Shown in pieces: positions 1-56,695 of a stretch of DNA of 64,000 nucleotides (positions within the stretch are counted from its first letter, which is position 1; each line of letters starts with the position of its first letter). The stretch covers positions 1,364,001-1,428,000 of the forward strand of contig OZ251239.1 in NCBI GenBank assembly GCA_965240325.2, written 5' to 3'. The notes under the pieces are model-generated. The model made no database searches. It was not told the DNA's origin and saw only the letters and a list, made by a program, of their open reading frames with translations. A program made the translations under genes and the position numbers. The DNA is from Rebecca billardiae RCC1528 (lineage: Eukaryota > Protista > Haptophyta).

Positions 1-3000
1 CTCAGTTGGCTTCACCTCAGCGGCGAGCTCAGCGCAGCGCTCGGCGCCGAGGCAGCGGGCGGCGCCGAGGCAGCGGGCGGCGCCGAGGCAGCGGGCGGCG
101 CCGAGGCAGCGGGCGGCGCCGAGGCAGCGGGCGGCGCCGAGGCAGCGGGCGGCGCCGAGGCAGCGGGCGGCGCCGAGGCAGCGGGCGGCGGCGGCGGCGG
201 CGGCGCGGCCGAGGGGCCGCGTGCGCCAAGCGGGCGGCCGCCCGCGCTGCTGGAGGAGCTCGGCGTGCGGCTCGGCTTGGTGCGCCCGTCGCAGCCCGCC
301 AACCCTACCCCCAACCCTACCCCCAACCCTGCTGCCCGCGCCGGCGCGGCCGGCGCGGCCGGCGCGGCTGGCGCGGCCGAGCGCGGCGCGCCACCGCGCG
401 CGCCGCCGTCGGCGGCGGCGTCGGCGGCGCCGACGCTCGCGCTCGCGCACGCGTGGGTGCTGCACGAGGGCTCGCGGCTCGCCGGCGTGCGCGCCGTCCT
501 CGCGCACGGCCACCCGCTCATGGCGGGCGGCGCGCGCGTCGAGTGTGTTGCGCGGCGCGTGCGCGCACACGCGGCCGTGCGCGCGCGCGCGCGCGTGGTG
601 CACGGGCGCATCGCGCCCGCGGACGGCGGCGGCGGCGGCGGCGCGGAGGGCGCCGCGCCGGGCGCGCCGCTCCCCGCCCTCCGCGCCGAGCTCGTCCTCC
701 CGGACTCGCTCACGGCCGGACTCGCCGCCGCGGACGTGAGCGTGCGCGCGGGCGGGCGGCGCGGCGCGACGCTGCGCGGCGCGAGGCTACGGCTGTGGCC
801 GGCGGCGACGGGGGCGTCGGCGAGCGTGGACGTGAGCGGTGCGCGCGGCGTGCGCGCGGGCGTGCGCCGCGACGCGTGGAGTGTGCGCGTGCACGCGCGC
901 GCTCACCACGCACGCCGCCGCCGCTGCCCCGCCGCCGCATGCCGCCCGCTGCGCCGCCTGCGCGCGCGCGCGCAGGCGGCGCGGCGCGCGGCGTGCGCGC
1001 GCGCGTGCGCGCCGCCGCGCCTCACATGAGCCTGCGCGCGGTCTCGGCGGTCTCCGGGCTGCCCGAGCTCGGCGTGCCGGCGGGCGCGCAGGTGCGCGGC
1101 GCGCTCGCGTGCGCGGCCGCGCTCGACGCCACCTGCGTGCTCGCGCGCGCGGCCGCGCCCGGCGCGCCGCCCTCGCCGCGGCCGCGCGCGCGCGCGCCGC
1201 CGCCGCCCGCCGCGGCCACAGACGCGGACGCGGCGGTCGGCGGCGGCGACAGCGAGGAGGAGGACGACGACGCCGGCGGCCTCCTCGCGTGGGTCGAGCC
1301 GGGCTCCGGCGTGCAGCTGGCGCTCCGCGGCCCCGCCGCCGTCTCACTGTGTGGGCGCTCGCTCAGCGTGGCGCGGGCGCTGCTGGAGGTGCGCCCGCAG
1401 CAGGCAGCACCGGACTGGGCAGCACCGGACTGGGCAGCACCGGACTGGGCGTGGGCGTGCGTGCGTGCGCGGCATGGCGTGTGTGCGCGCGTGCACGCAC
1501 ACGCCGGCTCTCGCCTGACGCGTCCCCTGCGCCACCGGCACGTGCCCCGCGGCGCGCGCGCGCGCGCGCCCACGTGCATTGCAGGTGCGCGCGCAGACTG
1601 TGTGCGCACTAGCGCTGCGCACACGCGCGGCCGCGGGCCAAGTGTCGGTGGCGTGGGACTTTGGTCCGGCGGAGGGCGCGGGCGCGCTGCCGCCGCGCCG
1701 CGCGGGCGAGGCGGTGCGCTGGCAGCTGCCGCCGCCGCGCTCGGCCGCAGAGGTTGCAGCGCTCGCGCCGCGCGCCGGCAGCGGCGGCGGCGGCGGCGGC
1801 GGCGCGGACGGCGGCGGCGCGACGCCGCCGTCACCGCTGACGCCCCGCGCGCGCGGCGGCGACGGCGGCGGCGGTCCGGTGGGCCCCGCGCTCACGGCGC
1901 ACTCGCCCGACGGCCGCGTCGTGGGGAGCTGCGAGCTGCTGCTGCCGCAGCTGCACCGCGCGGCCGTCTCGCTCACGCTGGGCGCGGACGGGCAGCTCGG
2001 CATCGGCGGCGCGCGCACGACGTCGAGTGGGGGCGCCGGCCTTTTTGACGAAACGTTCTTCCGCTGCCTCGTCAATCCGGCCGCGCACCCGGAGCGGGTG
2101 GTGGCGCTGCTCGACTCGGAGGCGGTGGCGCGGCGCATCGCCGAGCTCGCCGCCACGCTCGACGCCGACGCGGAGGCGGAGGCGGAGGCGGAGGCGGCGG
2201 GCGCCGAGCGCGGCGCGGCTGAGCGCGGCGGCAGCGGCGGCGGCGGCGTCAACGCGCCGGGCGGCCGCGCGGTGGCGACGAGCCCGCGCGCCGCGCGCGC
2301 CGCGCGGCCGCGCGCACGCGGCGGGCGGCGCGTGGCGCTTGGCCCGGCGGCGCGCCGCCTGCTCGCCGGCTGGGCTCGCTTCCGCCGCGTGCTGGCCGCG
2401 CATGCCGTCAAGCAGCCGCTCCACGTGATCCCCGCGCCCGCCATGGCCGCCGTGCTCGCGGCGCTGTGCTCGGACGACCGGCGGCACGCGGCCGCCATGC
2501 TGCAGCTCGTCACGCAGCTCAACGCCGCGGCGGGCGTGGACGTGCCCCTCGCCAAGGCCGTCCTGCGGGACGTCCTCAAGACCGCCGGGCTGTGGCCGAC
2601 CGCCCAGCGCCAACGCCGCGGCGGTGGCGGCGCCGACGGCGATGGCCCGGGTGGCGAGGGCGAGGGCGGAGGCGACGGCGGCGCGGCGTGCGACGGCACC
2701 GCCGGCTCGGACGCGGCGTGGCGCGGCGGCGACGAAGGCGACGGCGGCACCGGCGGCGGCGCGGAGGCGGCCGTGGAGTTCGCCCTCGACCGCGCCGTGC
2801 GCTGGGCGGCGCTGCTGCTGGCGCCCGCGCCGCCCGTGCCGCCGCGCCCGCCGCCGCCGCCGCGCCCGCCGCTCGCGTTCCGAGCGGAGCTTGCGGTCGA
2901 GCTGGCCGCTGTGCCGAGCGCGGCGCAGCTGTACGCCGCGGTGGGCGCGGAGGGCGGCGGTGGCGCGGGCGACGAGGTCGAGGGCGAGGCCGAGCCTGGC

Positions 3001-6000
3001 GACGGCGACGGCGCCGACGGCGGCGGCAGTGCGCCGCGCGGCGGCGGTGGCGACGACGCCGCTGAGGACTCGGGCGCGCGCGCGCTGCCGCCGCCGCCGC
3101 CGCCCGCGCCCACCGAGGTGGCGCCGCTCGTCGCCGTGCTCGCGCCGTTCATGGGCCTGGCGCAGCTCGAGGCGCTCCTCGCCGCGCGCCGCGCGCCGCC
3201 CCCGACCGCGCCGCACCCGCCGCCGCCGCAGGCCGCCGCGGCCACCGCCGCCCCCTCCGCAGCCGAGCCGGCGGCCGCGGACGCGGCCCGCGCGTCGGGA
3301 GACGCTCGGCTGTGGGCGCGCGCGGCGGAGGTGGCGAGGCTCAAGCGGCGCGTCGCCGCGGTGGCGGCGGCGTACGACACGATCACCGCCGTCCCCCAGG
3401 TGTGTGTGCGCGCGCACGCAGTGCGTGCATGCACGCACGCGCGCAGCGTGCGCACGCGCGCACGCGCGCGCGCGCGCACGCGCCGCGCGCACACGCCGCG
3501 AGTCGGCCGCGGCCCCGCGCCACGCTTACACCGCGCGCGCGCCGCGCGCCGCCGCGCGCAGGCATGGGCCATGTCGTCGTGGCTGGCGCAGGCCGTGCGC
3601 GCGTGCGGCGGCGCGGCTCGGCTGGACGCGAGGGCGCGCGCCGCGCGCGCGTCGCCGCCGCCCAGCCCGCCGCGCCGCGCGTCGCCGCCGCCGGGCGCGG
3701 CGGGGGGCGGCGACGACGGCGGCGGCGGCGGCGGCGGCAGCGCGGCGCGCGGCGCGGCGGCGGCGAGCACGGCCCCCACCGCCGCCGCGCCGCGCGAGTG
3801 CTGCGCGCGCGCGGCGCGCGTGCGTGACTGCTGGGGCAGCTCTTTGCTCGGCCCCGCAGATGTAGCCGCGCTGCTGCAGTCGTGCCTCGGATCCGCGTGG
3901 CGCGGCCGGCTGGTGCAGCTGAACACGCGGCTGCTTCTCGAGCTCACCCTCGCGCAGCCGCCGCGCTTCGTCGCCGCGACGCTGCTCGAGCTCGGCGGCG
4001 GCGCGGCCTTCTCCCAGCGCCAGCTGGCCGGGGCGCTCTTCGCCCTCCTCGAGGTCGAGCAGGAAGCGTTTTGCGCCGACGAAAGGCTGTGCGTGCCCGC
4101 CGCGCTCGAGGCCGGGCTGGGCGGCGGCGTGCAGTTTCCAGTACGCGCGCGGTACATGCGCGCCGGCCCGCTGCGCGAGCGCTCGTACTACGCCGACGTC
4201 TCCGAGGCCGCGGCGGCGGTCGCGCGCGCCGCGCGGCCGTACGCCGCGCTGCTGTCCCGGCTCACGCGCGCGTACCGCCGAGGCTACGGCCCGCGCCGCG
4301 GCGTGGCCGAGCCGGCCGCGGCCGCGCTGCCGCGCGCGCCGGCGCCGCGCGCGCAGCCGGCGCCACCCGCTCTCGGCGCGGCGCACGCGGCGATCGCCGC
4401 CGCCGACGGCCTCGGCGCGGCGTGCGTGCCCGAGCGCGCGCGCGGCTCGGCGGCGGCGTGGGCGGACGGCGCGGGCGCCGCCGTGCTCGCGCGCGCGCGC
4501 GCGGCGCGCGCGCACCTGCGCGCAGCCGCGCTCACGGGCGCGCTGCTGCGCGAGCGCCCGTCCGCGCTCGCGCTGCCGTGGGTGCGCGCGTACATGGCGC
4601 GCACGCACGAGGCGCTCACCGCACTCTCCGTGCTGCGCGCCGTGCAGAGCCGCGACGACGGCGGCGCGGCCGCGCGCTGGCTCGACGCGGTCGGCAGGCG
4701 AGCGCCGCCCGCCGGTCAGCCACTGCCTTACGGCGCGGCCGCGCTGCTGCCGGCGGCCGCGGCGGCGGCGGCGGCGGCGGCGGGCGACGGGGGCGGCGGC
4801 GTGGCGGGCGTGGCGCGCGCCGCCGCCGACGCGGCCGCGGCCGCCGCGACGGCCGCCACCGCCGCCGCGGCCGCGGCCGGCGTCGGCGCCGACGCCGCCG
4901 CCGCCGCCGCCGCCGGGCTCGGCGCTTCGCAGTCGCAGGCGCTCCTGCAGCGCGTGGTGCGCGCCCTGTACTTCGAAGCCTCAGCGCAGGAGCGCCTGCT
5001 GCAAGACCCGCTGTTGCGGCTGCTCATCGACCCGCCGCCGCCCGGCTCCGTGGGCTACGACTTCACTCTCGTCTCCGCGATGGGCGTGATCACCGAGGGC
5101 GCGCGCGGCGACGAGCTCGCGGCGACGTTCGCGCGGCTGCGCGCCGCGCGCGGCGTGCGCACCGTGCGCGCAGACACGGGCACGGTGCGAGGTCTCGTTT
5201 ACAACGGCGCGCGCGTGCGCGAGGCGGCGCGCGCCGTGCGCACGGCCACGTGGGGGTACGTCGGCTACTCGCAGGGGTGCACCAACGCGCTGTACGCCGA
5301 GGCCAGCATGGCCGCCGGCGCGCCCGAGGACGCCGCGCTGCTGCGAGGGCTCGTGTGCCGCCGGCTGCTCTTCTCAGCGGCCAACGGCTCAGCGCACTCG
5401 ACGTGCGGCGAGTGGAAGGTGCGCCCAACCCTAACCCTAACCCTACCCTAGCCCTAGCCCGCAAGCAGGGGGCGGCCCCGCCGCCGCCCCTGCTGCCGCC
5501 GCCCTGCGCACGCTGCGTGCGCCCCGCCGCCAGCCCCTCGCCCCCGCACCCCAACGCAGCCCGCGCCACGCCCCCCGCCACGGCGCGCGTGCGGTGCGGT
5601 GCGCGCGCAGATCCGACACGCACTCGTCCGCGCAGAGCTCGGTCTCAAGGCGCACGAGGCCGCCTTCTCCGCGCAGGCGACCGCGGCGTTCCTGGGGGCG
5701 CTGCGCACGCTCTTCGAGGCGCCGGGCGCGGCGCACGCGCTCGGCTCGCTCGCGAGCCTCTCGCGCGACGGCGTAGTGGAGCAGCTCTGGGAGGGAGCGG
5801 CGCACAAGCGCTGGGTGCCAACGGCCGCGCTCGCCGCCATCGTGGAGGCGCACTCGCTGCCCGAGGCGCTGCACCAGTTTAGTCACGTGCTGAGCGCGCA
5901 GATCGAGTCGGCGGCGCACGACACGCAGGTGGCGGTGGACGAGGCGGCGCTGCACCCGGTGGGCGTGCGCAACGGCAACGCGCGCATGCTCCACCGCTGC

Positions 6001-6207
6001 GCCGTCCCCTCCGCCGTGCAGCGCACGCACCACTGGTCGCCGCTCGACCGCGCGGTCGACTTTGTGCAGACGCCGGCCGACGTGGCGCGCGGCGTGTACG
6101 ACTCGCCAAAGGACCGGCACGTGGTGCCGTGGATCGAGACGCTCGCGCGCTTCGGCGTCATCCCGCGCTGCGAGCCGCCCGAGCCCGCGGCGCCCGCGGC
6201 CGAATAA
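1..6207 (+). CDS. Large 5'-partial multi-exon protein with a C-terminal alpha/beta-hydrolase-like (GxSxG) region
   Basis: Frame 1 is open from base 1. Phase-consistent GT-AG introns at 881-975, 1389-1584, 3400-3561 and 5419-5610 join the ORF segments. The C-terminal part has WGYVGYSQGC (nucleophile-elbow-like), FSAANGS and THHWSPL, and stops at 6207. Confidence 0.7.
43..190 (+). repeat. 18-bp coding tandem repeat, about 8 copies, encoding AEAAGG
   Basis: GGCGCCGAGGCAGCGGGC repeated head to tail in the open frame 1. Confidence 0.9.
1404..1449 (+). repeat. 15-bp intronic tandem repeat x3
   Basis: GCAGCACCGGACTGG occurs three times inside intron 1389-1584. Confidence 0.85.
5427..5460 (+). repeat. 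Short interstitial telomere-like (CCCTAA) tract in an intron
   Basis: AACCCTAACCCTAACCCTACCCTAGCCCTAGCCC begins 8 nt after the start of the 5419 splice donor. Confidence 0.7.
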
Positions 6208-6699
6208 GCCATCATCGCGGGCGGCATCGTCGTCCGAACCTGCGCTAGCTATGCATGCCACCTGCCGAGTGTATGTGCGGCATGCTGGTGGCTGGCTGCG
6301 CTGCAGTAGCCAATAAGCCGCCGCGTGCCTCGCGCTGCCGTAATCAGCTATATATATATCTTGCCGGGTGGCCAGCAGGCGCGAGTAGAAATAAGCGCCG
6401 GCCGTTGCCCCGGTTCCGCGCCCATGATCGACGACACTGTTAGGCGGGCCTGCGCTACCGAGTACGACGTAGTAACGACTGCTGCTGCTGCGGAAGTCAT
6501 CGGCGCGCGCCTGCCGATGGCCGCCGCCCGCAACTGCATATATGCGGAGTGCGGACACACGCCGGTCGTCACGCTCCGGCCCGACGCGCCCGACTATACT
6601 AGCAGACGGGACGGGGCTGCCCCAGCACTCCCAGCAGTATCGGGCCGGCGGCCGCATGCGCAGCGTTTATACGGTTTCCGGTCGCCATCAGACGCCCAC

Positions 6700-6733: not shown

Positions 6734-6887
6734 CGATGATGGCGCGGCCTACTACTCGTTACTCGACGAGTTCGACGACGATGATGAGTAGCGCGCGTTA
6801 TATGCGCGCCCGGCGCGGATCAGCCCGCGGTGCTGCCGCACCAGGCGGCACCAGTAGCGCCGCGGCGCGGCAGCCGGCCGCGCGACG

Positions 6888-9838
6888 CTACGGCTTGCCC
6901 TTCGCGCCGCCGCCGCCGCCGCCGCCGCCCTGCTTGCCCGCACGCGCCGCGCCGCCGCCGCCGCCGCCCTTCTTCTTCTTGAGGTGCTTGGGCGTCTTGG
7001 TCGCGCGCGCCTCGCGCCGCGCCTCGCGCACGGCGCGCTTCCGCTCGCGCTTTGCCTGGGGGTCCTCGTTGCGGTGCATCGCGCGCCGCGCGCGCCGCTC
7101 GCGCCGCGCGTCGCTGTCCGCGCCGCCCTCGCCGCCCGCCTCCGAGCCGGACCCGCTCGAGCCGTCGGCTTCGGAGTCGGCGTCGGAGTCGGACTGCGCG
7201 GCGCCCTCGCCCTCGCCCCCGCCGCCGCCCGCCGCGGCCGCGGCCGCGCCCTCAGCCTCGGCCGCGCCGCCACCGGCGGTGCCGCCCGGCCGCGCCGCGG
7301 GCGCGTGCTTGACCGCGAGCGACTCGTCGAAGCCGGCGAGTGAGGCGTACAGCGGGCGCGCGCCGCCCGCGCGCGCCGCCGCCGAGTCCGCCTCCATCTG
7401 CGCGCGCGGCACTTCGTCGAGGGTTCGGGGTATGTGCACCTGACGGAACACGGCGGCCGCGACCTCCGCCTCGGCGGCGGCGGCGCCGCCGTCGCCGCCA
7501 GCATCGCTCGAGCCCTCGCCGTCGTCGCGCGCGCCCACCGCCGCCTCCTCCGCCGCCGCGCGCGCGTGCAGCCTGCCCAGCTCCGCGCCCACCGCCGCCT
7601 CGTCCGCACCCGCCAGCGAGACGTCGGTGACGAAGTCGAAGAGCGCGCGCTCGGAGAGCACGGGGAAGACGCCCCAGCGGCGGAAGAACCTGACCACGTT
7701 GCTCACGTCGTGCCGCAGGAAGGCGAGCGCGTTCGGGTGGTCGTGCTCCACCGACTGCGACACGTCGATCACGTACAGCGTCTGCACGCACGCGCACGCA
7801 CGCGCACACGCGCACACACGCGCACACACGCACACGCACACGTGCGGAGAGGCGGCGGAGGCGGAGGCGGAGGCCGCGGGGCGGCTCGGCACGCGCGCGC
7901 GGAGGGCGCGGCGGGCGGGCGGGCGGGCGGGCGGCGGTGCCCGCGGGCGCGACGCTGCCCCGTGGGTGCGCAGCACGGCGCACGCGCGCGCACACACACA
8001 CCCGCCCGCCCGCAGAGCCGCACCTTGTCGTACCACAGCAGGTTGAACTCGGAGAGGTCTGCGTGCACCAGCCTGCACGCGTGGAACATGGTGCGCATGG
8101 CGCGCACGCACTGCGAGTACGCAGAGGCGAGCTTGGAGGCGGAGAGGCGCGGCGCGGCGTCCTTGAGGCGCGGCGCGGCGCGGCCGTCGTGCCCGACGAA
8201 GCGCATGAGCAGCACGTGCGCGCGCAGCAGCAGCGGCTGCGGCGTCGGCACGCCCGAGGCGTACAGCCGCAGATAGTTTCGCATTTCCTTCTCAGCCCAC
8301 GTGCGCACCATCTGTGGCAGCGCGCGGGCGGGGCGCGCGCGCGGCGCGCGGGCGGCGGGCAGCCACCGGGGCGGCGGCGGGCGGCGGCACAGAGCGCGGC
8401 ACGGGCGCGGCCGAGTGAGCGCCGCGCGCGCATCGGCGGCGGCCCGCGCCCAGGCCCGCGCGCCACGCTCCGCCCCGGCTGCCTGCATGCAAGCCCCCAC
8501 CGCTGCGCTAGTCCCCGCCCCCGCGCGCGCGCGTGCCGCCCCGCCCACCTTGCGCGGGTTCGCCTTGCAGTAGCCGTGGCGGAAGCGGAACTCGCCCGAG
8601 ACGTACTTGTCGCGGTCGCGGAAGACGAGGATCGACGTCTTGTACACCTGCGGCCGTGCACCGAGCACAGCCGCACACAGAGAGCCAGCCATGGGGCGCG
8701 GGCGCGCGCGCGCTGGTGAGAAGGGTGCGGCGAGGCGCGGCGCGGTGCACGCGCCACACGCGGGAGCCGCGCCGCGCCGCGCACTGGAGAGCCGCCGTGC
8801 GCGCCAGCCCCCGCACCTTCACCGCCAGCTCGGCGCCCTCCCTGTCCGTGGCGTGGTACACGTTGGCCTCCTTGCCCGTGGAGACGCAGCCCGCCAGCGA
8901 GGACAGCTGGCCGCTGTTGAGCAGCCGGAACAGGATCAGCCGCGTGCGCGGGTCCAGCACCTGCGGCCGGGGTGGGCGGGGGTGGGTGGGAAGGGCGTGG
9001 GCGCGCGGCGGCGGCCGGCCGGCGGGGACGACGGCTGCCGTCGCCGCGCTGGCGCGGCGGCGCGCGGGGGCGGACGCGGCGCGCGGGGGCGGACGCGGCG
9101 CGCGTGCCTGCTCGTTGGTCGCACGGTCCTCGCGCGCGAGGCCCGTCGCGCGCCGCCCCGCCGCCTTGCTCTCCGAGCGCGCCAGCGAGTTGCGCGCCAC
9201 CGAGCCCAGCTCAGACTGCAAGCCGCCGCCGCCGCCGCCGCCGTCGCCTCTCGCGCCGCCGCCGCCCGCGCCGCCGCCGCCGCTCACGCTGTCGCCCAGG
9301 TGGAGCGAGCGGTTGAGCCGGCGGGCGAGAGGCGCGGAGGCGTCGCCGCGCAGCCGCGTGGCCGCCGCGCCCACGCCGCGGATGAACGCGTCGTCGTCGT
9401 CTGCGGGGCGGCGCGCGCGCCGGCGCGGCCGGCGCCGAGCGCTGGTGAGCGGAGGCAGCATGGGGGCTGGCACGGCGCGCGCGGCACGCGGCGCGCATGG
9501 GCACGCGCGCGCGCACCGCCGAGCTCCTCGAGCGCGGAGCGGAGGGACGGGTCGTCCTCCTCCCACTCCTCCTCGCCCTCGCCTTCGCCCTCCTCCTCCC
9601 ACTCCTCCGCCTCCGCCTCCGCCCCAGCCTCCACCTCCTGCTCGCCGGTCGCGAGCGTCTCTGCAGCCGCGCGCGCCGAGGGGTCCGCTGCCGAGCTGGC
9701 CGCCGCCGGCGCACCGGACAGATCGGCGTTATCTACCGCCACTCGCGATGCGCGCAGCCCGGCCTCGGCGCGTGCGTCGGCCGGCGCTGTCGAGGGCTCG
9801 CCCGCCCGCTGGTCGGCGCGGAGCGTGTCAGCCGCCAT
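6888..9838 (-). CDS. RIO1: RIO1 atypical Ser/Thr kinase (40S biogenesis), 6 exons
   Basis: Motifs [87 protein letters not shown] and a basic C-terminal tail. Introns at 9401-9516, 8961-9107 (GC-AG), 8648-8816, 8312-8548 and 7782-8023. Confidence 0.95.
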
Positions 9839-26338: not shown

Positions 26339-27724
26339 TCATCGTCGCGACATCGCTGCTGGCTGTGGCTCGCGCACCCGCGCCTCGAGCTCGCGCAGGT
26401 ACTGCAGCGTGGCATGGTGCTCATCCTCAGAATCAGCTTGTGCCGCGGGACTGGAGCGTGCGCCAACGCGCAGCTGGGCGCCCGCGGGCTCGGCCTCGCC
26501 CTCCATGACCAAGCGCAGCACGCGCAGGTGCGACGGGTCGGCCGCCTGCTCGGCGAGACGCAGCCGCATGCGCGCGCGCACGAGCTCGGCGCGCATGCGC
26601 TCGGTGGCAGCGCGCTCGGCAGCGAGCGCGGCGGCAGCGTCGGCGTGCCGCGTGTCCACAGCGGGCTCCACCAGCCGGCCGAGCAGCGGAGCATCTGCAA
26701 CATGCTCCCCGCTGCCACTGCCGCCTGGCTCGTCAGCGGGCGGGGCAGTGCTTAGCGCGGGCTGTGTGTGCGCTGCATGCGCCCTGCTCGGCCCCGCGCG
26801 CTTGCCCGGCCCATCGCCGCGGCTGCGCGGGCCACTGCCACTCGCGACATCAGAGCAACGCGGAGGGCGAGCCTCGGCGCGAGCCGTGGCCCTCGGTGGC
26901 TGTGGGTGCGGCTGCGAGCCAGCGGCTGCGGCAGCAGCTGCGGTCGTGCTGTCGCCATTGCGCTGCACGCGCCTGCGCTTTGCGATGCCGCCCTGCTGAG
27001 GCTCAGGGGCTGCAGCACGCTTGCGCTCGCGCATGGCGCGCCCGCTGATCATGCCATCCAGCTTGTGCGTGGCGCAGCGACTGAGACGTTTGTCGCCCGG
27101 CATGCCAAAGGACGGCTGCTTATCACAGCCGGCATGCTCGCACCTGCGGCTGACCACGTTGACCATGCCGGCCAACTGGTGCGTGGCGCAGCGGCTGGCA
27201 CGTGTGTCGCCCGGCATGCCAAAGTGCGGCTGCTTGTCACAGCCGGCATGCTCGCACCTGCGGTGGCCCACGTCGACCATGCCGGCCAGCTTGTGCGTGG
27301 CGCAGCGGCTGGCACGTGTGCCGCCCGGCATGCCGAAGTGCGGCTGCTTGTCGCAGCCGGCATGCTCGCACCTGCGGCTCCTCACGTCGACCATGCCGGC
27401 CAGCTTGTGCGTGGCGCACCGGCTGGCCCATTTGCCGCCCGGCATGGCAAAAGACGGCCGCGTGTCACAGCCGGCATGCTCGCACCTGCGGCTAATCACG
27501 TCGACCATGCCGGCCAGCTTGTGCGTGGCGCAGAGGCTGGCACGTGTGCCGCCCGGCATGCCGAAGTACGGCACCTTGTCGCAGCCGGCATGCTCGCACC
27601 TGCGGCGCTTCACGTCGACCATGCCGGCTAGCTTGTGCGTGGCGCAGCGGCTGGGACGTGTGTCGCCCGGCTTGCCAAATGCCGGTTGCTTGTCACAGCC
27701 AGCTCGGCCGCACGTGCGGGGCAT
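26339..27724 (-). CDS. EsV-1-7-type Cys/His repeat protein, copy A (6 repeats)
   Basis: 38-aa C-x4-C-x16-C-x2-H repeats ([34 protein letters not shown]...), bipartite NLS and conserved C-terminal domain. ATG follows the family leader. Confidence 0.85.
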   Translation of the reverse strand: MPRTCGRAGCDKQPAFGKPGDTRPSRCATHKLAGMVDVKRRRCEHAGCDKVPYFGMPGGTRASLCATHKLAGMVDVISRRCEHAGCDTRPSFAMPGGKWASRCATHKLAGMVDVRSRRCEHAGCDKQPHFGMPGGTRASRCATHKLAGMVDVGHRRCEHAGCDKQPHFGMPGDTRASRCATHQLAGMVNVVSRRCEHAGCDKQPSFGMPGDKRLSRCATHKLDGMISGRAMRERKRAAAPEPQQGGIAKRRRVQRNGDSTTAAAAAAAGSQPHPQPPRATARAEARPPRCSDVASGSGPRSRGDGPGKRAGPSRAHAAHTQPALSTAPPADEPGGSGSGEHVADAPLLGRLVEPAVDTRHADAAAALAAERAATERMRAELVRARMRLRLAEQAADPSHLRVLRLVMEGEAEPAGAQLRVGARSSPAAQADSEDEHHATLQYLRELEARVREPQPAAMSRR

Positions 27725-28390
27725 CCTCGCGCGCGTCAGCCACGTAGCGTGTGCCGTGCTACTCGAAAGGGCAGTGAAGACTACCAAGGCGAGGCCGCCA
27801 TCGTGCCCCGTGTGCGAGTTGTCGGCGGAGGCTCGCTGCCAGCCGGCCTCGGCGGGACGAGGGCAGCCGCTCGAGCACGTGAGCACGGTCGGGAGTACGC
27901 CCCGCCACGCACGTGCGGTGTGGACGTCGCGTAGGATGAAGCCGTGGCGCATGGGCCGCTCGCGCCGGCTGCAGCGGAGAAGTGATGGCCGCTGCGCGAG
28001 GCCGCCCGTCGCAGACTCGCAGCGGTCGGCCAGCCCGGGACTGCCAGCCGTACCGATCGTGCGCTCGCCTGCCTGCCGCCACGTCTGGAGTCGCTGGAGG
28101 GTGTGCTTTCTGACGGTGATTGCGTTGGGCTCATCACGTGGCTGCTACACGCCCGTCATAGAGGGGAGACCTCGACGTTTAGACGGCGTCTGCTGAGACC
28201 AGTCCGCGCCTTGCCGCCATGGCGCACGTAAACATGCCTGGATGTGCAGCGTCCGGCGTCGTAGCTCCGCCCGTCCCGGTAGCTCGATCGACTGGCGAGC
28301 GGCGGCAACTTGACGCGCCGATAATAGCCCGGCGGCGGTCATCATCATGCGTATACGCATCAAAGCACGGCGTCTTCAGCACAACGACTA

Positions 28391-30112
28391 TCAACGCGAC
28401 GGCGCTGCTGACTGCTCACGCACCCTCGCCTCGAGCTCGCGCAGGTACTGCAGCGTGGCCTGGCGCTCGTCATCAGAAGCAGCTCGTGCCGCGGGACTGG
28501 AGCGTGCGCCTCCGGCCGGTGGTGCGCTCATGGGCTCGGTCTCGCCCTCCATGACCAAGCGCAGCACGCGCAGGTGCGACGGGTCGGCCGCCTGCTCGGC
28601 GAGACGCAGCCGCATGCGCGCGCGCACGAGCTCGGCGCGCATGCGCTCGGTGGCGGCGCGCTCGGCGGCGAGCTCGGCGGCATGGTCGGCGTGCTGCGTG
28701 ACCGCGGCGGGCTCGACTAGCCGGCCGAGCAGCGGGGCATCTGCCGCGTGCTCACCACTGCCACTGCCGCCTGGCCCGTCAGCGGGCGGTGCAGTGCTCA
28801 GGGCTGGCTGTGTGTGCGCTGCATGCGCCCTGCTTGGCCCCGCGCGCTTGCCCGGCCCATCGCCTTGGCTGTGCGGGCCGCCGCTGCTCGCGACAGCAGG
28901 GCGATGCAAAGGGCGAGCCTCCGCGCGAGCTGTGGCCCTCGGTGGCTGTGGACGCGGCTGCGAGCCGCCAGCAGCGGCAGCTGCTGCTGCCGTGCTGCCG
29001 CCATTGCGCTGCATGCGCCTTCGCTTTGCGCTGCCACCCTGCCGAGGCTCAGGGGCTGCAGCCCGCTTGCGCTCGCGCATGGCGCTCTTGCTGATCATGC
29101 CATCCAGCTTGTGCGTGGCGCAGCGACTGAGGCGTGTGTTGCCCGGCATGCCGAAGCACGGGTACTTGTCACAGCCAGCATGCTCGCACCTGCGGCTCTT
29201 CACGTCGACCATGCCGGCCAGCTTGTGCGTGCCGCAGCGGCTGGGGCGTGTGTCACCGGGCATGCCGAAGCACGGGTGCTTGTCACAGCCAGCATGCTCG
29301 CACCTGCGGCTCTTCAAATCGACCATGCCGGCCAGCTTGTGCGTGCCGCAGCGGCTGGGGCGTGTGCCGCCCGGCATGGCAAAGGACGGCTGCTTGAAAC
29401 AGCCGGCATGCTCGCACCTGCGGCTCTTCACGTCCACCATGCCGGCCAGCTTGTGCGTGCCGCAGCGGCTGGCTCGGGTGCCGCCCGGCATGGCAAAAGA
29501 CGGCCGCGTGTCACAGCCGGCATGCTCGCACCTGTGGCTGACCACGTTGACCATGCCGGCCAGCTTATGCGTGGCGCAGCGGCTGGCACGTGTGTCACCA
29601 GGCATGCCGAAGGACGGCACCTTGTCACAGCCGGCATGCTCGCACCTTTGGTGCTTCACATCGACCATGCCGGCCAGCTTGTGCGTGGCGCAGTGGCTGG
29701 CTCGGGTGCCGCCCGGCATGCCGAAGTACGGCTGCTTGTCACAGCCGGCATGCTCGCACCTGCGGCTCTGCACGTCGACCATGCCGGCCAGCTTGTGTGT
29801 GGCGCAGTGGCTGGCATGTGTTTCGCCCGGTATGCCAAAGTGCGGCCGCTTGTCGCAGCCGGCGTGCTCGCACCTGCGGCTCTTCAAATTGACCATGCCG
29901 GCCAGCTTGTGCGTGACGCAGCGGCTGGCACGCGTGTCACCCGGCATGCCAAAGTGCGGCTGCTTGTCACAGCCGGCATGCTCGCACCTGGGGTGCTTCA
30001 CGTCCACCATGCCGGCCAGCTTGTGTGTGGCGCAGCGGCTGGGACGCGCGGCACCCGGCTTGCCATATGCCGCCCGCTTGTCACAGCCAGCTCGACCGCA
30101 CGTCCGGGGCAT
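28391..30112 (-). CDS. EsV-1-7-type Cys/His repeat protein, copy B (9 repeats)
   Basis: Same architecture as copy A. Intact 573-aa ORF. Confidence 0.88.
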   Translation of the reverse strand: MPRTCGRAGCDKRAAYGKPGAARPSRCATHKLAGMVDVKHPRCEHAGCDKQPHFGMPGDTRASRCVTHKLAGMVNLKSRRCEHAGCDKRPHFGIPGETHASHCATHKLAGMVDVQSRRCEHAGCDKQPYFGMPGGTRASHCATHKLAGMVDVKHQRCEHAGCDKVPSFGMPGDTRASRCATHKLAGMVNVVSHRCEHAGCDTRPSFAMPGGTRASRCGTHKLAGMVDVKSRRCEHAGCFKQPSFAMPGGTRPSRCGTHKLAGMVDLKSRRCEHAGCDKHPCFGMPGDTRPSRCGTHKLAGMVDVKSRRCEHAGCDKYPCFGMPGNTRLSRCATHKLDGMISKSAMRERKRAAAPEPRQGGSAKRRRMQRNGGSTAAAAAAAGGSQPRPQPPRATARAEARPLHRPAVASSGGPHSQGDGPGKRAGPSRAHAAHTQPALSTAPPADGPGGSGSGEHAADAPLLGRLVEPAAVTQHADHAAELAAERAATERMRAELVRARMRLRLAEQAADPSHLRVLRLVMEGETEPMSAPPAGGARSSPAARAASDDERQATLQYLRELEARVREQSAAPSR

Positions 30113-39083: not shown

Positions 39084-40505
39084 ATGCCCCCCACGTGCGG
39101 TCGAGCTGGCTGTGACAAGTATGCATCATATGGCAAGCCGGGTACACGTGCCAGCCGCTGCGGCACGCACAAGCTGGCCGGGATGGTGGACGTGCTGCAC
39201 CGCAGGTGCGAGCATGCCGGCTGTGACAAGCAGCCGCACTTTGGCATGCCGGGTGACACGCGTGCCAGCCGCTGCGTCACGCACAAGCTGGCCGGCATGG
39301 TCAATTTGAAGAGCCGCAGGTGCGAGCACGCCGGCTGCGACAAGCGGCCGCACTTTGGCATACCGGGTGACAAACGTGCCAGCCGCTGCGTCACGCACAA
39401 GCTGGCCGGCATGGTGAACGTGGTCAGCCGCAGGTGTGAGCATGCCGGCTGCGACAAGCGGCCGCACTTTGGCATACCGGGCGAAACACATGCCAGCCAC
39501 TGCGCCATGCACAAGCTGGCTGGCATGGTCGACGTGAAGAGCCGCAGGTGCGAGCATGCCGGCTGCGACAAGCATCCGCACTTCGGCATGCCTGGCGACA
39601 CACGTGCCAGCCGGTGCGCCACGCACAAGCTGGCCGGCATGGTCAACGTGAAGAGCCGCAGGTGCGAGCATGCCGGCTGTGACAAGCAGCCGTGCTTTGG
39701 CATGTCGGGTGACACGCGTCTCAGTCGCTGCGGTGCGCACAAGCTGGGTGGCATGATCTTCAAGCGCACCTGGTTTGAGCGCAAGCGTGCTGCAGCTCCT
39801 GAGCCTCAGCAGGGCGGCAGCGCAAAGCGAAGGCGTGTGCAGCGCAATGGCGGCAGCACGACCGCAGCTGCTGCCGCAGCCGCTGGCTCGCAGCCGCACC
39901 CACAGCCACCGAGGGCCACGGCTCGCGCCGAGGCTCGCCCTCCGCGTCGTCCTGATGTCGCGAGTGGCAGCGGCTCACGCAGCCGCGGCGATGGGCCGCG
40001 CAAGCGCGCGGGGCCGAGCAGAGCGCATGCAGCGCGTGCACACACAGCCCTAAGCGCTGCCCCGCCCGCTGACGGGCCAGGCGACGGTGGCAGCGGGGAG
40101 CATGCGGCAGATGCACCGCTGCTCGGCTGGCTGGTCGAGCCCGCCGCGTCCACGCAGCACACCGACGCTGCCGCCGAGCTCGCCGCCGAGCGCGCCGCCA
40201 CCGAGCGCATGCGCGCCGAGCTCGTGCGCGCGCGCATGCGGCTGCGTCTCGCCGAGCAGGCGGCCGACCCGTCGCACCTGCGCGTGCTGCGCTTGGTCAT
40301 GGAGGGCGAGGGCGAGCCTGTGGGCGGCCAGGAGCGCGTTGGCTCGCGCTCCAGTCCCGCGGCACGAGCTGAGTCTGATGACGAGCGCCATGCCACGCTG
40401 CAGTACCTGCGCGAGCTCGAGGCGCGGGTGCGCGAGCCCGCAGCAGCAGCAGGCCGTTGTATCGCGCACGCAATTGACTGGCGGCGTCGTACTGTAGTAT
40501 CTTAG
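39084..40505 (+). CDS. EsV-1-7-type Cys/His repeat protein, copy C (6 repeats)
   Basis: Same architecture. Intact 473-aa ORF. Confidence 0.88.
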   Translation: MPPTCGRAGCDKYASYGKPGTRASRCGTHKLAGMVDVLHRRCEHAGCDKQPHFGMPGDTRASRCVTHKLAGMVNLKSRRCEHAGCDKRPHFGIPGDKRASRCVTHKLAGMVNVVSRRCEHAGCDKRPHFGIPGETHASHCAMHKLAGMVDVKSRRCEHAGCDKHPHFGMPGDTRASRCATHKLAGMVNVKSRRCEHAGCDKQPCFGMSGDTRLSRCGAHKLGGMIFKRTWFERKRAAAPEPQQGGSAKRRRVQRNGGSTTAAAAAAAGSQPHPQPPRATARAEARPPRRPDVASGSGSRSRGDGPRKRAGPSRAHAARAHTALSAAPPADGPGDGGSGEHAADAPLLGWLVEPAASTQHTDAAAELAAERAATERMRAELVRARMRLRLAEQAADPSHLRVLRLVMEGEGEPVGGQERVGSRSSPAARAESDDERHATLQYLRELEARVREPAAAAGRCIAHAIDWRRRTVVS

Positions 40506-41376
40506 CGCAGTCCGAAACCATTTGTACGTAAAACGATCAACAGTGGCGGAGTAACAGTACTACAGGGGGTCCAGATGGTGGCGGGCCCCACTAGTGGCGG
40601 TGGCTGGCGCACGCGGCACGGGGCCGGGCCTAATCGCCCGTAATGCGGCACGTCCGTGCCTCTCGGGACGGGTATTGAGCGGTGGCGAGGTCGCCAAATC
40701 GCGTGGCGTGGTCCCAGACAAGGTTGTTACTAGTCCTGATCAGCTCGCTAGCCATGTCAGTCGATGATCACCTCGCCGTTGACAGGCGCGCACACGCTGC
40801 ACACGTGACACGTATTAATTGGCGCACGGCATAACACCGTCGGGCGGCGGTCGCACGACTACCGCGCAGTCAACATTGATCGTCAGACTCACGGTGTGTG
40901 GGGTCAGACAGAATATTGACTGGCCTGCACCGTCGCAAGGCATACCAAAGAGGTCGGCATGGCCGTCAGAAGGGTGATCCCGGTCCCTACTTGCCCATTC
41001 TTCCCATACGAGCCTCACACGATCGCCGCCCGCACGAGGACGTGGACGTGAACGTGAGAGTGGTCGAAAAGTCGGAACGGAAGCTGTCACACATGCTCAC
41101 ATGCTCGTACGGCGACGCCGACCGGCGTGTGGCATGCCCCCCGGTCCCGGACGTGCCACACGCGCCTTGGATCGTGGTGGGATTGGTGGGACGGGCATTC
41201 ACGCCCGCCATGGCTTCCTTTCCGAAGTGGGACACGGCATACTGTACAGTACGGCCTGGGCAGGCTGGCTCACCAGCACGGCCACACGAGGGCGGCCTCG
41301 CCCTCAAGCTGGTTGGCAGGTCTTCACTGCCCCTTCGAGTAGCGCGGCACACGTTGCGTGGCTGACGCGCGCGAGG

Positions 41377-42759
41377 ATGCCCAGCACGTGCCGTCGAGTT
41401 GGCTGTGACAAGCAGCCGTCATTTGGCTATCCGGGTGCCGCGCCTCCCAGCCGCTGCGTCACGCACAAGCTGGCCGGCATGGTCGATTTGAAGAGCTGCA
41501 GGTGCGAGCACGCCGGCTGCATGCCCGGCGACACACGCCGCAGCCGCTGCGCCACGCACAAGCTAGCCGGCATGGTGGACGTGCAGCACCGCAGGTGCGA
41601 GCATGCCGGCTGTGTCAAGCAGCCGTACTTTGGCATGCCGGGCGACACACGTGCCAGCCGCTGCGGCACGCACAAGCTGGCCGGCATGGTCGACTTGCAC
41701 AGCCCCAGGTGTGGGCATGCCGGCTGTGACAAGCACCCGTGCTACGGCATGCCCGGCGACACACGCCGCAGCCGCTGCGCCACGCACAAGCTAGCCGGCA
41801 TGGTGGACGTGCAGCACCGCAGGTGCGAGCATGCCGGCTGTGTCAAGCAGCCGTACTTTGGCATGCCGGGCGACACACGTGCCAGCCGCTGCGGCACGCA
41901 CAAGCTGGCTGGCATGGTGGACGTGAAGAGCCGCAGGTGCGAGCATGCCGGCTGTGACAAGGTGCCGTCCTTTGGCAAGCCGGGTGACGCACGTCTCACC
42001 CGCTGCGCCGTGCACAAGCTGGCTGGCATGATCAATGTGCGCGCCTGGCGCGAGCGCAAGCGGGCTGCAGCCCCCGAGCCTCAGCAGGGCGGCAGCGCAA
42101 AGCGCCTGCGTGTGCAGCGCAATGGCGGCAGCACGACCGCAGCATCAGCTGCTGCTGCCAGCTCGCAGCCGCGTGCACAGCAACCGAGGGCCATGGCTCG
42201 CGCAGAGGCTCGCCCTTCGCGTCGCTCTGATGTCGCGAGTGGCAGCGGCCCGCGCAGCCCCGGCGATGGGCCGGGCAAGCGCGCTGGGCCAAGCAGGGCG
42301 CATGCAGCTCGCGCACAGCCAGCCCTGCGCACGGCTCCGCCTGCTGATGGGCCAGGCGGTGGAGGTGGCGGGGAGCATGCCGCAGATGCTCCGCTGCTCG
42401 GCCGGCTGGTCGAGCCCGCCGCAAGCACGCAGCACGCCGACGCTGCCGCCGAGCTCGCCGCCGAGCGTGCCGCCACCGAGCGCATGCGCGCCGAGCTCGT
42501 GCGCGCGCGCATGCGGCTGCGTCTCGCCGAGCAGGCGGCCGACCCGTCGCACCTGCGCGTGCTGCGCTTGGTCATGGAGGGCGAGGCCGAGCCTGTGGGC
42601 GGCCAGGAGCGCGTTGGCGCACGCTCTACTCCCGCGGCACGAGGTAATGAGCCTGATGACGAGCGCCAGGCCACGCTGCAGTACCTGCGCGAGCTCGAGG
42701 CGCGGGTGCGTGATCCTGCAGTGACGCCGCGCGACGATTCCGCGCGTGCTGGCAACTGA
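41377..42759 (+). CDS. EsV-1-7-type Cys/His repeat protein, copy D (6 repeats, repeat 2 with a 7-aa in-frame deletion)
   Basis: Same architecture. Repeats 2-3 and 4-5 form a duplicated pair. Confidence 0.85.
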   Translation: MPSTCRRVGCDKQPSFGYPGAAPPSRCVTHKLAGMVDLKSCRCEHAGCMPGDTRRSRCATHKLAGMVDVQHRRCEHAGCVKQPYFGMPGDTRASRCGTHKLAGMVDLHSPRCGHAGCDKHPCYGMPGDTRRSRCATHKLAGMVDVQHRRCEHAGCVKQPYFGMPGDTRASRCGTHKLAGMVDVKSRRCEHAGCDKVPSFGKPGDARLTRCAVHKLAGMINVRAWRERKRAAAPEPQQGGSAKRLRVQRNGGSTTAASAAAASSQPRAQQPRAMARAEARPSRRSDVASGSGPRSPGDGPGKRAGPSRAHAARAQPALRTAPPADGPGGGGGGEHAADAPLLGRLVEPAASTQHADAAAELAAERAATERMRAELVRARMRLRLAEQAADPSHLRVLRLVMEGEAEPVGGQERVGARSTPAARGNEPDDERQATLQYLRELEARVRDPAVTPRDDSARAGN

Positions 42760-42910
42760 CGATGTGTACGTGTCACGTCGTCGTACGAAGTCATGCATGT
42801 CACCGTCGTCTGTTACTGTCAGTCGGTTTGATCACAGTCAGTCACACGAAGCGTACCCTTGGTCACACCGTCGTCACCATCAATCATCCGGCATAGATCA
42901 TGGATGATGG

Positions 42911-44550
42911 TTGTATAACCGCTCGGTTATGCGGGTATAACTCACCGGTAGCCCTCATGAGGGCGGGCTGGCAGCCAGGGTCCGGCTGCCTGGAGGTTTT
43001 CCGGTCGTCAAGCCGAGCCAGGCCCGGATTGGGCGCGGGCCTGGATTGGCTCAGCAGCTTGGCAAGCCATGCGCGTCTGGGTGCGGCCGCGCTCGCTGGC
43101 TGCACCCGCGGCGCGGCGGCCGGCGTGGCTGCTCTGGTCACCGCGGCGCTGGTGGCTGCTCCTCCTCTGGGAGTTGTTTCTTCCAGGTGCGTGTGCGTCG
43201 GCGGTAGGCCGCCCTCAGCCCTCGCTCTCTCCACTCGTGCACCTGCCCTGCTTGCTCTCTGCTTTCGATGGGGGCGCCTCGGAGCCGCTTCGAGGCGTCC
43301 CCGTCTGCAATCTTCTCATGCTCTATCTGCTTTCGATGGGGGCGCCTCGGAGCCGCTTCGAGGCGTCCCCGTCTGCAATCTATCTTCTCATGCTCTGCTT
43401 TCGATGGGGGCGCCTCGGAACCGCTTCGAGGCGTCCCCGTCTGCAATCTTCTCATGCTCTGCTTTCAATGGGGGCGCCTCGGAACCGCTTCGAGGCGTCC
43501 CCGTCTGCAATCTTCTCATGCTCTGCTTTCGATGGGGGCGCCTGGGAACCGCTCCCAGGCGTCCCCGTCTGCAATCTTCTCACGCTTCGCAGTCTCGCTT
43601 GCCTTCATCGCCTGGCGGGTGGGTGCTGCTCTCTCCTTCTCTGCCGCCTCCTCTGCAGTCTGCCGTGCACTGCTGTGTGTGGGATGCGACCTGCTACCTT
43701 ATCTGACGCTACGCGTGCGTGTCTCGCGCCTGCTTCCCGCCTGCGCCGCCGCCGCCGCGCATGTTTTCGTGCCCACTGTCTCATGCCGTCTGGATCGTCC
43801 TTACTCATACAACCCTGCGGGGAGCCCCTCTGGGCCTCTGCCGCCTTCGGTCCTCGCGCTACCCCTTCGGCGGCCTCGGCCTCTTCGGGCCCCCGGCCAC
43901 CACCCCTGCGGGGTGTGGCATTCCACACCTCCTTCTGGGTGGAGGCCCTCGAGGCCTCTGCCTCCTGCGGCGCCGCGCTCTGCCCAAACTTGCGTTGGGG
44001 GGGGGCGTCGGCTGCCAGCGCCTGCGGTCTACGTGCTCCATCGAGTACTTCCTCTTCGGCGTCTAGGCGGTCATCGGCTTCTGTCGGCGTAGTTGCTCGA
44101 ATGCATCGGCGAGTCCTTCCTGGTCGGCGTCGCATCCTGGACGGCTTCGGGGGTGTGACCTAGTCACCTCACGCGTTTATCAACGCGGCCCCCACCTCAA
44201 TCTACTCTCATGTGGGTCTACCGAGTGAGTTATGGTTGTATAACCGCTCGGTTATGCGGGTATAACTCACCGGTAGCCCTCATGAGGGCGGGCTGGCAGC
44301 CAGGGTCCGGCTGCCTGGAGGTTTTCCGGTCGTCAAGCCGAGCCAGGCCCGGATTGGGCGCGGGCCTGGATTGGCTCAGCAGCTTGGCAAGCCATGCGCG
44401 TCTGGGTGCGGCCGCGCTCGCTGGCTGCACCCGCGGCGCGGCGGCCGGCGTGGCTGCTCTGGTCACCGCGGCGCTGGTGGCTGCTCCTCCTCTGGGAGTT
44501 GTTTCTCCCTGCCCTCCCACCCTGCTGGTTGCTGGGTGGGCATGGCCTTG
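42911..44550. mobile_element. Putative non-autonomous structured retroelement-like insertion with 275-bp direct repeats
   Basis: 42907-43181 matches 44232-44506. GGATGATGG at 42902-42910 and 44551-44559 is a candidate TSD. No RT or transposase ORF was recognised. Confidence 0.7.
43258..43582 (+). repeat. 64-68-bp tandem repeat x5, each with a 17-bp hairpin
   Basis: Units start at 43258, 43326, 43394, 43458 and 43522. Core: GATGGGGGCGCCTCGGA-(G/A)CCGC-TTCGAGGCGTCCCCGTC. Confidence 0.92.
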
Positions 44551-44722
44551 GGATGATGGAGACACATCAACACAGTCATCCGTCCGGTCAGGTGCTGCAT
44601 CCTGCGCTCCGGCTCGACCCGGCGGACCCGCCGCTGCGTGTCCGGTCAATCATCAGCGCGGCGCGCGCGGCGCCATTGTCGCGCAGCGGCCTTGGCCGGC
44701 GGACGCTCGACGCCGACGGCCG

Positions 44723-55507: not shown

Positions 55508-56695
55508 ATGCCCAGCATGTGCGGCCGAGCTGGCTGTGACAAGCGCGCGATATATGGCAAGCCGGGTACACGTGCCAGCCTCTGCGCTGCTCACAAGCTG
55601 GCCGGCATGGTGGACGTGAAGAGCCGCAGGTGCGAGCATGCCGGCTGTGACAAGCAGCCGTACTTTGGCATGCCGGGCGACACACGTGCCAGCCGCTGCG
55701 CCACACACAAGCTGGCCGGCATGGTGAACGTGAAGAACCGCAGGTGCGAGCATGCCGGCTGCCACAAACAGCCGTACTTTGGCATGCCGGGCGACACACG
55801 TGCCAGCCACTGCGCCACACACAAGCTGGCCGGCATGGTGGACGTGAAGAACCGAAGGTGCGAGCATGCCGGCTGTGACAAGCATCCTAACTATGGCACG
55901 CCGGGTGACACATGTCTCCGTCGCTGCGCTGTGCACAAGCTGGGTGGCATGATCAGCATGCGCGCCATGCGCGAGCGCAAGCGGGCTGCAGCCCCTGAGC
56001 CTCAGCAGGGCGGCAGCGCAAAGCGCAGGCGCGTGCAGCGGAACGGTGGCGGCACGGCTGCAGCAGCTGCCGCTGCTGCCAGCTCGCAGCCGCAGCCGCA
56101 GCCACCGAGGGCCACGGGTCGCGCTGAGGCTCACCCACCGCGTCGCCCCGCTGTCGCGAGCGGCAGCGGCCCGCGCAGCCGCGGCGATGGGCCGGGCAAG
56201 CGCGCGGGGCCGAGCAGGGCGCATGCAGCGCATACACAGCCCGCCCTGGGCACTGCCCCGCCTGCTGATGGGCCAGGCGGTGGAGGTGGCGGGGAGCATG
56301 CGGCAGATGCCCCGCTGCTCGGCCGGCTGGTCGAGCCCGCCGCGTCCACGCAGCACACCGACGCTGCTGCCGAGCTCGCCGCCGAGCGCGCCGCCACCGA
56401 GCGCATGCGCGCCGAGCTCGTGCGCGCGCGCATGCGGCTGCGTCTCGCCGAGCAGGCGGCCGACCCGTCGCACCTGCGCGTGCTGCGCTTGGTCATGGAG
56501 GGCGAGGCCGAGCCCGCGGGCGCCCAGCCGCGCGTTGGCGCACGCTCCAGTCCCGCGGCACAAGCTGATTCTGAGGACGAGCGCCATGCCACGCTGCAGT
56601 ACCTGCGCGAGCTCGAGGCGCGGGTGCGCGAGCCAGCAGGCGAGCAGCGACGTCGCGCGACGGCGTCGTCCGATTATTCCGCCGGCCGCGCGTGA
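55508..56695 (+). CDS. EsV-1-7-type Cys/His repeat protein, copy E (4 repeats)
   Basis: Same architecture and family leader. Confidence 0.85.

Follow-up and report, generated by a model that had tools for sequence, protein, structure and literature searches.

A five-hairpin array in Rebecca billardiae RCC1528, very probably an inherited minisatellite of a young non-autonomous split-repeat retroelement

The array of five 17-bp hairpins located at positions 43257-43586 of the window (the whole 64,000-nucleotide stretch of contig OZ251239.1 analyzed here) is very probably a hairpin minisatellite inherited as part of a young, non-autonomous split-repeat retroelement. The explanation that best accounts for the data as a whole, and which we consider likely, is that the array was inherited as an internal module of a young element lacking proteins of its own, whose split direct repeats follow the Ngaro/PAT layout. 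The reading of these hairpins as a structured RNA locus in its own right was not borne out, the array being a fixed internal part of a mobile element present in about 60 copies. The features of the element are the following:

42902-42910 (left) and 44551-44559 (right), no strand: 9-bp direct repeat GGATGATGG, duplication-like, with the left copy overlapping the first 4 nt of the element (direct reading).
42907-43181, + strand: A1, the left split direct repeat, 275 bp, 100% identical to 44232-44506.
43182-43256, + strand: linker between A1 and the array, where the sister family (family II) and the copy C17 have 69 extra bp with a decayed "unit 0" (alignment).
43257-43586, + strand: five-unit array with units of 64/68 bp (repeat finders, folding, arrays at other loci).
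43267-43305, 43335-43373, 43403-43441, 43467-43505 and 43531-43569, + strand: hairpins of units 1-5, each with two 17-nt arms around a 5-nt loop.
43587-43936, + strand: remaining internal non-coding region, pyrimidine-rich (AT skew -0.476), 93% identical between families I and II.
43937-44233, + strand: B1, split direct repeat, 297 bp, whose second copy (B2) occurs in full copies elsewhere and is absent here.
44200-44290, + strand: B1/A2 junction, a long stem-loop (-60.7 kcal/mol), the presumed image of a circle junction or recombination site.
44232-44506, + strand: A2, the second A copy, 100% identical to A1.
44507-44552, + strand: 46-bp tail after A2 and end of the window copy; full copies add 18 bp and then B2.

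The region 42907-44552 is a dispersed repeat, sharing 97-99.9% identity with every locus compared (alignment to the fetched loci). The 77-nt array unit has at least 202 matches at about 61 places of the 72-Mb, 41-contig assembly, the array-bearing element is harbored at about 60 genomic places, and the candidate copies of the A repeat in the genome are about 129. The complete element is about 1.96 kb long and consists of A1 (275 bp), an internal region of 755 bp including the array, B1 (297 bp), A2, 64 bp, and B2. In the loci L031-L040, B2 is present 64 conserved bp after A2, and unique flanks start directly beyond it; in the full copies A1 corresponds to A2 and B1 to B2, whereas the window copy itself lacks B2. 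The layout described for Ngaro is A1-[ORFs]-B1A2B2 (PMC8547959), and that described for PAT/Ngaro is A1-B1-A2-B2 (PMC4157794). None of the ORFs of the element matched a Pfam family, and neither a reverse transcriptase, nor an RNase H, nor a tyrosine recombinase is encoded by it; this, in turn, leaves a non-autonomous derivative as the only option. Judging by the arrangement of its repeats, the element would replicate through an RNA intermediate.

In the miniature LTR derivatives (TRIM/LARD), the LTRs lie at the very ends of the element, a 4-6-bp target duplication is produced, and a primer-binding site is found by the 5' LTR. The reading of the two 275-bp repeats as LTRs of this kind was ruled out: B2 was found past A2, so that another 379 bp of the element (46 + 18 + B2) follow the second of the 275-bp repeats, and the full copies lack a duplication (the ends of nine of them revealed no target duplication beyond a common AT dinucleotide). 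The array is not a coding repeat either, given the lack of Pfam matches and because unit lengths of 64/68 bp, which are not multiples of 3, break the reading frame.

The window copy is 1.65 kb long and does not include the final 315 bp (18 bp plus B2), ending 46 bp past A2. On both sides it is flanked by GGATGATGG, a 7-9-bp duplication, GGATGAT(GG). The missing B2, together with this flanking duplication, suggests that this shortened copy was not inserted by a clean recombinase integration but in some other way. Its membership of the youngest subfamily and the identity of A1 with A2 mark the window copy as a recent insertion. It is placed 147 bp 3' of the stop codon of a gene with EsV-1-7 repeats (ORF 41101-42759) and upstream of a large gene; an empty-site paralogue defining the insertion was not found in the window, the GC content of which is very high and patchy (45-87%).

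Concerning the surroundings, at least five genes made of 114-bp (38-aa) cysteine-rich EsV-1-7 repeats are clustered in the window (27050-30088, 39084-42759, and 55568-55951). The ORFs 39084-40505 and 41101-42759 match PF19114 at 2e-79 and 7e-73, respectively, and these two neighboring genes share about 89% identity across 840 bp. Nothing special about the neighboring genes is implied by the finding of the hairpin element. Other truncated copies of the element stop at differing points on the B2 side (L041, G000:C23:1015001-1025000, and L043, C20:743001-753000); the former has GGTTCGAG near both junctions, and the latter a GCATG microhomology at its end.

The sequence features from which the analysis started were fully recovered. 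Tandem Repeats Finder identified at 43257-43586 a period of 64 with 5.0 copies, and the repeat finder gave five copies with unit starts 68, 68, 64 and 64 apart. On the + strand, each hairpin pairs at 17 out of 17 positions (14 Watson-Crick pairs and 3 G-U pairs). The folding energy of the single units ranges from -30.5 to -36.2 kcal/mol on the + strand versus -22 to -28 on the - strand, where the fold is weaker because the three wobble positions open as A.C. Compared with shuffled sequences, single units have z = -5.6 to -7.3, and the entire five-unit array has z = -13.2 on the + strand and -8.4 on the - strand. Thus repeat finders and the folding of both strands confirmed the five 17-bp hairpins with three G-U pairs on the + strand.

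Furthermore, re-reading of the units found every difference among them that had been described. Unit 5 has CTGGGA / TCCCAG versus the CTCGGA / TTCGAG of the other units, i.e., a C-G to G-C swap plus a G-U to G-C change; the first stem base of unit 4 is changed from G to A; a loop position is polymorphic (G/A) between units 1-2 and units 3-5; and units 1 and 2 have 4-nt spacer insertions. The heptamer AACCGCT is found at the apex of units 3-5 (units 1-2 have GCCGCT) and in the apical part of the B/A junction stem-loop (43284-43296 and 44243-44252). Its presence in both places is only a lead, with a chance expectation of about 0.1.

Twenty-six arrays were compared, for a total of 132 hairpin units; about 35 more arrays, and all but one of the family II copies, were considered as coordinates only. 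Five units are present in 24 out of 26 arrays and six in the other two, and 23 of the five-unit arrays have exactly the spacing of the window array (68, 68, 64, 64). The occurrence of the same five-unit pattern at the other loci implies that the array, with its unit-5 variant, was already in the master copy. The differences between units all predate the insertion, and the array came to this locus ready-made, by transposition of the master copy.

The array and a tree of the elements allowed us to distinguish a young subfamily of 11 copies, including that of the window, carrying the A in unit 4; another subfamily without this A; an older subfamily in which a C of unit 3 is changed to U, giving a U.G pair; and one divergent copy, C17. 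Moreover, when the internal region of one odd, incomplete copy (L019) served as query, a sister family emerged, family II, with at least 20 copies that are mutually 99-100% alike and whose internal region is 93% identical to that of family I. In family II and in C17, unit 5 is CTCGGA / TCCCAG, with a C.C mismatch, and the compensating G is present in all 22 other five-unit arrays. By parsimony, the 3' arm of unit 5 would have changed first, and the 5' arm would have compensated later. About 11 differences separate C17 from family I, the compensating change among them, which makes a random compensating hit unlikely (in the order of 0.3%).

The same two, family II and C17, have in addition 69 extra bases 5' of the array. 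These contain a decayed hairpin, unit 0, retaining 13 bp and folding at -23.3 kcal/mol (+ strand) and -20.3 (- strand). It departs from the standard unit by a double change of G-C to A-U, the loss of three pairs from both arms, a G-U where the others have none, another loop sequence, and one bulged U. The machine alignment misplaces the 3' arm of unit 0, which was therefore compared by fold only and aligned by hand.

The odd copy mentioned above (L019:166-2677; G000:C21:576439-579515) is chimeric: its family II portion, comprising A1, unit 0, the array and the internal region, is joined to a young family I copy; the joint is at 1287/1288, and the family I part begins inside A1. According to the alignment of the window, L019 and L024, the A1 of family I diverges by 0.4% from that of family II and by 3.6% from that of C17, and the internal region by 4.4% and 0.9%, respectively. 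Such a mosaic divergence suggests recombination between element lineages.

As for proteins that might act on the hairpin element, a six-frame search of the genome found a tyrosine-recombinase family at five places. Two of these loci, L051 and L050, are recombinase-encoding elements with the same repeat plan as the hairpin element:

L051: A1 at 1420-1868; ORF at 2897-5827; array of 85-bp units at 5892-6589; B1 at 6878-7141; A2 to 7588; 92 bp; B2 at 7681-7944.
L050: same order on the opposite strand; 1286-aa ORF; array of 36-bp units directly after the stop codon (5360-5691).

Their ORFs (976 aa in L051 and 1286 aa in L050) have the C-terminus of a tyrosine recombinase (E of about 3e-5), which is the only Pfam match in either of them, the putative reverse transcriptase having none. 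The motifs FTDD, FSDAA and NPGP are present in the ORF, and its N-terminal 720 aa are nearest to the RVT_1/RT_RNaseH clusters, with a score of 0.97, in a look-alike comparison by a language model; the putative reverse transcriptase/RNase H of L050 and L051 is a lead, not proof. In L051 (2897-5827) a 2A-like motif, LRGERVGEARNPGP, at aa 398-411 separates the RNase H-like part from the tyrosine recombinase, and L051 is devoid of the N-terminal part of the long ORF present in L050.

In both elements the ORF runs in the A1 to B2 direction, and the array is embedded between the stop codon and B1. By analogy, the + strand of the window is the presumed RNA strand of the hairpin element, that is, the sense strand, where the G-U pairs work. 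The ORFs of L050 and L051 share 98.8% identity, whereas their arrays are wholly different (36-bp units versus 85-bp hairpin units), with the homology ending at the end of the ORF; the array of L050 hardly folds (z = -2.1), and that of L051 is composed of small hairpins. Different arrays behind near-identical ORFs indicate that arrays are common at this position and that hairpins are not obligatory. The B/A junctions of the three families form stem-loops of -60.7, -43 and -38 kcal/mol and have in common the short motifs UAUAACCG and ACCGAGUG. These stem-loops and motifs are the only likeness, since blastn of the hairpin element against L050 and L051 did not retrieve any similarity, nor did the covariance model of the hairpin detect anything in them; among the loci compared, none proved to be an autonomous partner sharing its A and B repeats. 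The homology of our hairpin to those of the L051 array was rejected: the covariance model scored only 6.6 bits with an E of about 7, so that their similarity (a G-run/C-run stem containing a single G-U) carries no weight.

At L053:2867-8563 (G000:C12:518001-528000) one hairpin-element copy directly adjoins, with no base in between, an internal part of the ORF of a recombinase element, an arrangement which is either a nested insertion or a product of recombination. Recombinase elements and one hairpin-element copy are hosted by (AT)n or (AC)n microsatellites (L051:1390-1420 and 7944-7974; L052; L031:3590-3630).

Regarding the function of the array, we can depict the following scenario. The element would be transcribed from A1 to B2, by analogy with the ORF-bearing elements, and the + strand hairpins with their G-U pairs would thus be in the element RNA; copying and insertion would depend on enzymes (reverse transcriptase, RNase H and tyrosine recombinase) that autonomous elements of the same plan provide in trans. 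Slippage, or else template switching, might have generated the array from a palindromic unit of the non-coding stretch 5' of B1, a position at which related elements also have arrays, each of a different sequence. The hairpins would represent a redundant, multivalent cis handle in the element RNA for the trans-acting machinery, and their stems would be kept complementary in the replicating lineage. We propose only tentatively that the hairpins have such a cis role in the element RNA, as a redundant handle for trans proteins. The more specific possibility that the array is a multivalent cis RNA module allowing its recognition (for packaging, reverse transcription, or circularisation) by an autonomous RT/RNase H/recombinase or by Gag is rather unlikely; if true, no RNA-structure signal would have been defined earlier for the DIRS/Ngaro order, and such a recognition role could explain why several families of this genome have arrays 5' of B1.

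The idea that selection acts on the structure of the + strand RNA, which was the core of the original prediction, stands in part. The structure is real and strand-asymmetric, complementarity was restored after a mismatch in unit 5, and the + strand is the presumed transcript. What was not supported is the expected covariation over the genomic copies: the 8 distinct stem variants, in which 98.5% of the cells are paired, include one pair changed on both sides, and 119 out of 500 shuffles gave an equal result, so the signal is not significant. Since the array has been copied as a block about 60 times with the mobile element, its five hairpins are not five independent samples. The hand-aligned unit 0 provides a second compensatory pair, with matched deletions in both arms. 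Two further comparisons were put aside as signs of selection: stem changes among the copies, which look neutral (pairing is kept in 5 out of 9 on the + strand and in 4 out of 9 on the - strand), and the conservation of the stems relative to their flanks between families I and II, which does not differ significantly (4/170 versus 15/344 substitutions).

Of the stem transitions able to discriminate between strands in this array and in L051, 9 out of 10 keep the pairing of the sense strand (post hoc, one-sided p of about 0.01). Each counted once, the nine are the three ancestral G-U, one in unit 0, two subfamily changes, and three in the L051 hairpins; the single exception is a terminal pair. Judging from the sequences compared, this strand pattern speaks for an effect at the RNA level, on the sense strand. 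A mutation bias of that strand (RNA editing or reverse-transcriptase errors) could produce the same pattern; its estimate from subfamily-diagnostic sites was dropped because they are too few (about 10).

It is quite possible, as another explanation, that the array is a neutral passenger, i.e., a palindromic minisatellite with no role for either the element or the host, built by slippage of the polymerase or reverse transcriptase, which hairpins promote, and with its complementarity restored without selection by template switching, in which one arm is copied from the other. The correction of quasi-palindromes by template switching is a known mutational hotspot, which makes the arms more complementary (PMC7202029, PMC3820800), and it would yield in single steps both the compensation in unit 5 and the matched arm deletions in unit 0. 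The history of the families agrees with such neutrality: family II reached at least 20 near-identical copies despite its mismatch, family I multiplied after the loss of unit 0, which was thus lost without harm, and the basal pair of unit 4 is an A.C in the youngest subfamily. The nonsignificant tests of covariation and stem conservation reported above point in the same direction, as do the 98.8% identical ORFs of L050 and L051, which precede entirely different arrays, one of them not made of hairpins. However, template switching gives perfect Watson-Crick arms, and the three G-T pairs persist in all the units; in addition, neutrality leaves unexplained the wobble-compatibility of nine out of ten strand-discriminating transitions on the sense strand, as well as the maintenance of the whole array in both protein-less families, although all the coding sequence is gone. 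On balance, a cis handle in the RNA and a neutral array are nearly equal as readings of these data.

That the 17-5-17 palindromes bind a dimeric protein in duplex DNA, for example as accessory recombinase sites or, for a transcription factor, as an internal enhancer, appears improbable. Recombinases act on inverted repeats separated by a short spacer, a form similar to that of our units, with a crossover region typically of 6-8 bp; the spacer of 5 nt is shorter than this, the arms differ at 3 out of 17 positions in a strand-consistent manner, and symmetric changes in both half-sites, such as those of units 5 and 0, are not predicted by this reading. The sharing of the apex heptamer AACCGCT with the B/A junction stem-loop would fit it, but would arise by chance in about one case out of ten. 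Very improbable is a small-RNA locus of the host or of the element, or an independent structured non-coding RNA gene. The hairpins are indeed stable, and miRNA-precursor models gave matches of 33, 28 and 21 bits; these are all sub-threshold, the best being 33.4 bits versus 70, and no match was found at the Rfam gathering thresholds in the whole window. Hairpins of 39 nt with 17-bp stems are shorter than the usual Dicer substrates and poor small-RNA precursors, and the suggestion that the array serves as a source of small RNAs did not survive, given this size and Rfam matches so far below threshold. RNA interference is known to control DIRS-1 (PMC7192593), which would be in favor of a small-RNA locus. 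Against it, the locus is one of about 60 identical copies of a mobile element, and metagenome pattern scans for the hairpin and the junction in other organisms found neither outside this genome.

With the array regarded as an inherited module of the element, what appeared to be a structured-RNA locus becomes a correctly annotated mobile element, and about 60 identical false "RNA gene" calls are avoided. It also offers a tractable case for the cis needs of a non-coding tyrosine-recombinase retroelement, having two young sister families, one of which carries a stem mismatch and a sixth hairpin.

The untranslated regions of retrotransposons can hold tandem arrays, e.g., the hypervariable 3' region of plant LTR elements. 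Similarly, our array occupies a non-coding interval beside terminal repeats, at which the sequence differs wholly between close relatives (L050 versus L051); unlike those arrays, each unit is here a strong 17-bp hairpin with wobble pairs on the sense strand and a compensatory change. Retroviruses and LTR retrotransposons possess cis-acting stem-loops for packaging or dimerisation, which, like the hairpins described here, are stable, lie near the 5' part of the genomic RNA, and are retained in non-coding derivatives depending on proteins provided in trans; in our case the hairpin is repeated five-fold. Retrotransposition in the DIRS/Ngaro order is poorly understood, and to our knowledge no packaging-type RNA signal has been defined for these elements, which makes the array a sensible first candidate to test.

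The quasi-palindrome hotspots (PMC7202029, PMC3820800) share with our units an imperfect inverted repeat whose arms become more complementary through a change in one arm. They are single-locus events, whereas in our case a replicating element spread the result, and its G-T pairs escaped correction.

The closest similarity is with the Ngaro/PAT-type elements of the DIRS order, which include the TOC1-like elements of green algae: the split repeats are arranged as A1-[internal]-B1-A2-B2, the nine full copies whose ends were compared show no target duplication beyond the common AT, the B/A junction is spanned by a stem-loop, and elements of the same plan with RT-RNase H-recombinase (the RT/RNase H being putative) are present in this genome. 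Differently from them, the hairpin element has no ORF at all, harbors 64 conserved bp between A2 and B2, and has an internal region dominated by the hairpin array; moreover, the window copy, with its 7-9-bp duplication and without B2, fits poorly with a clean recombinase integration.
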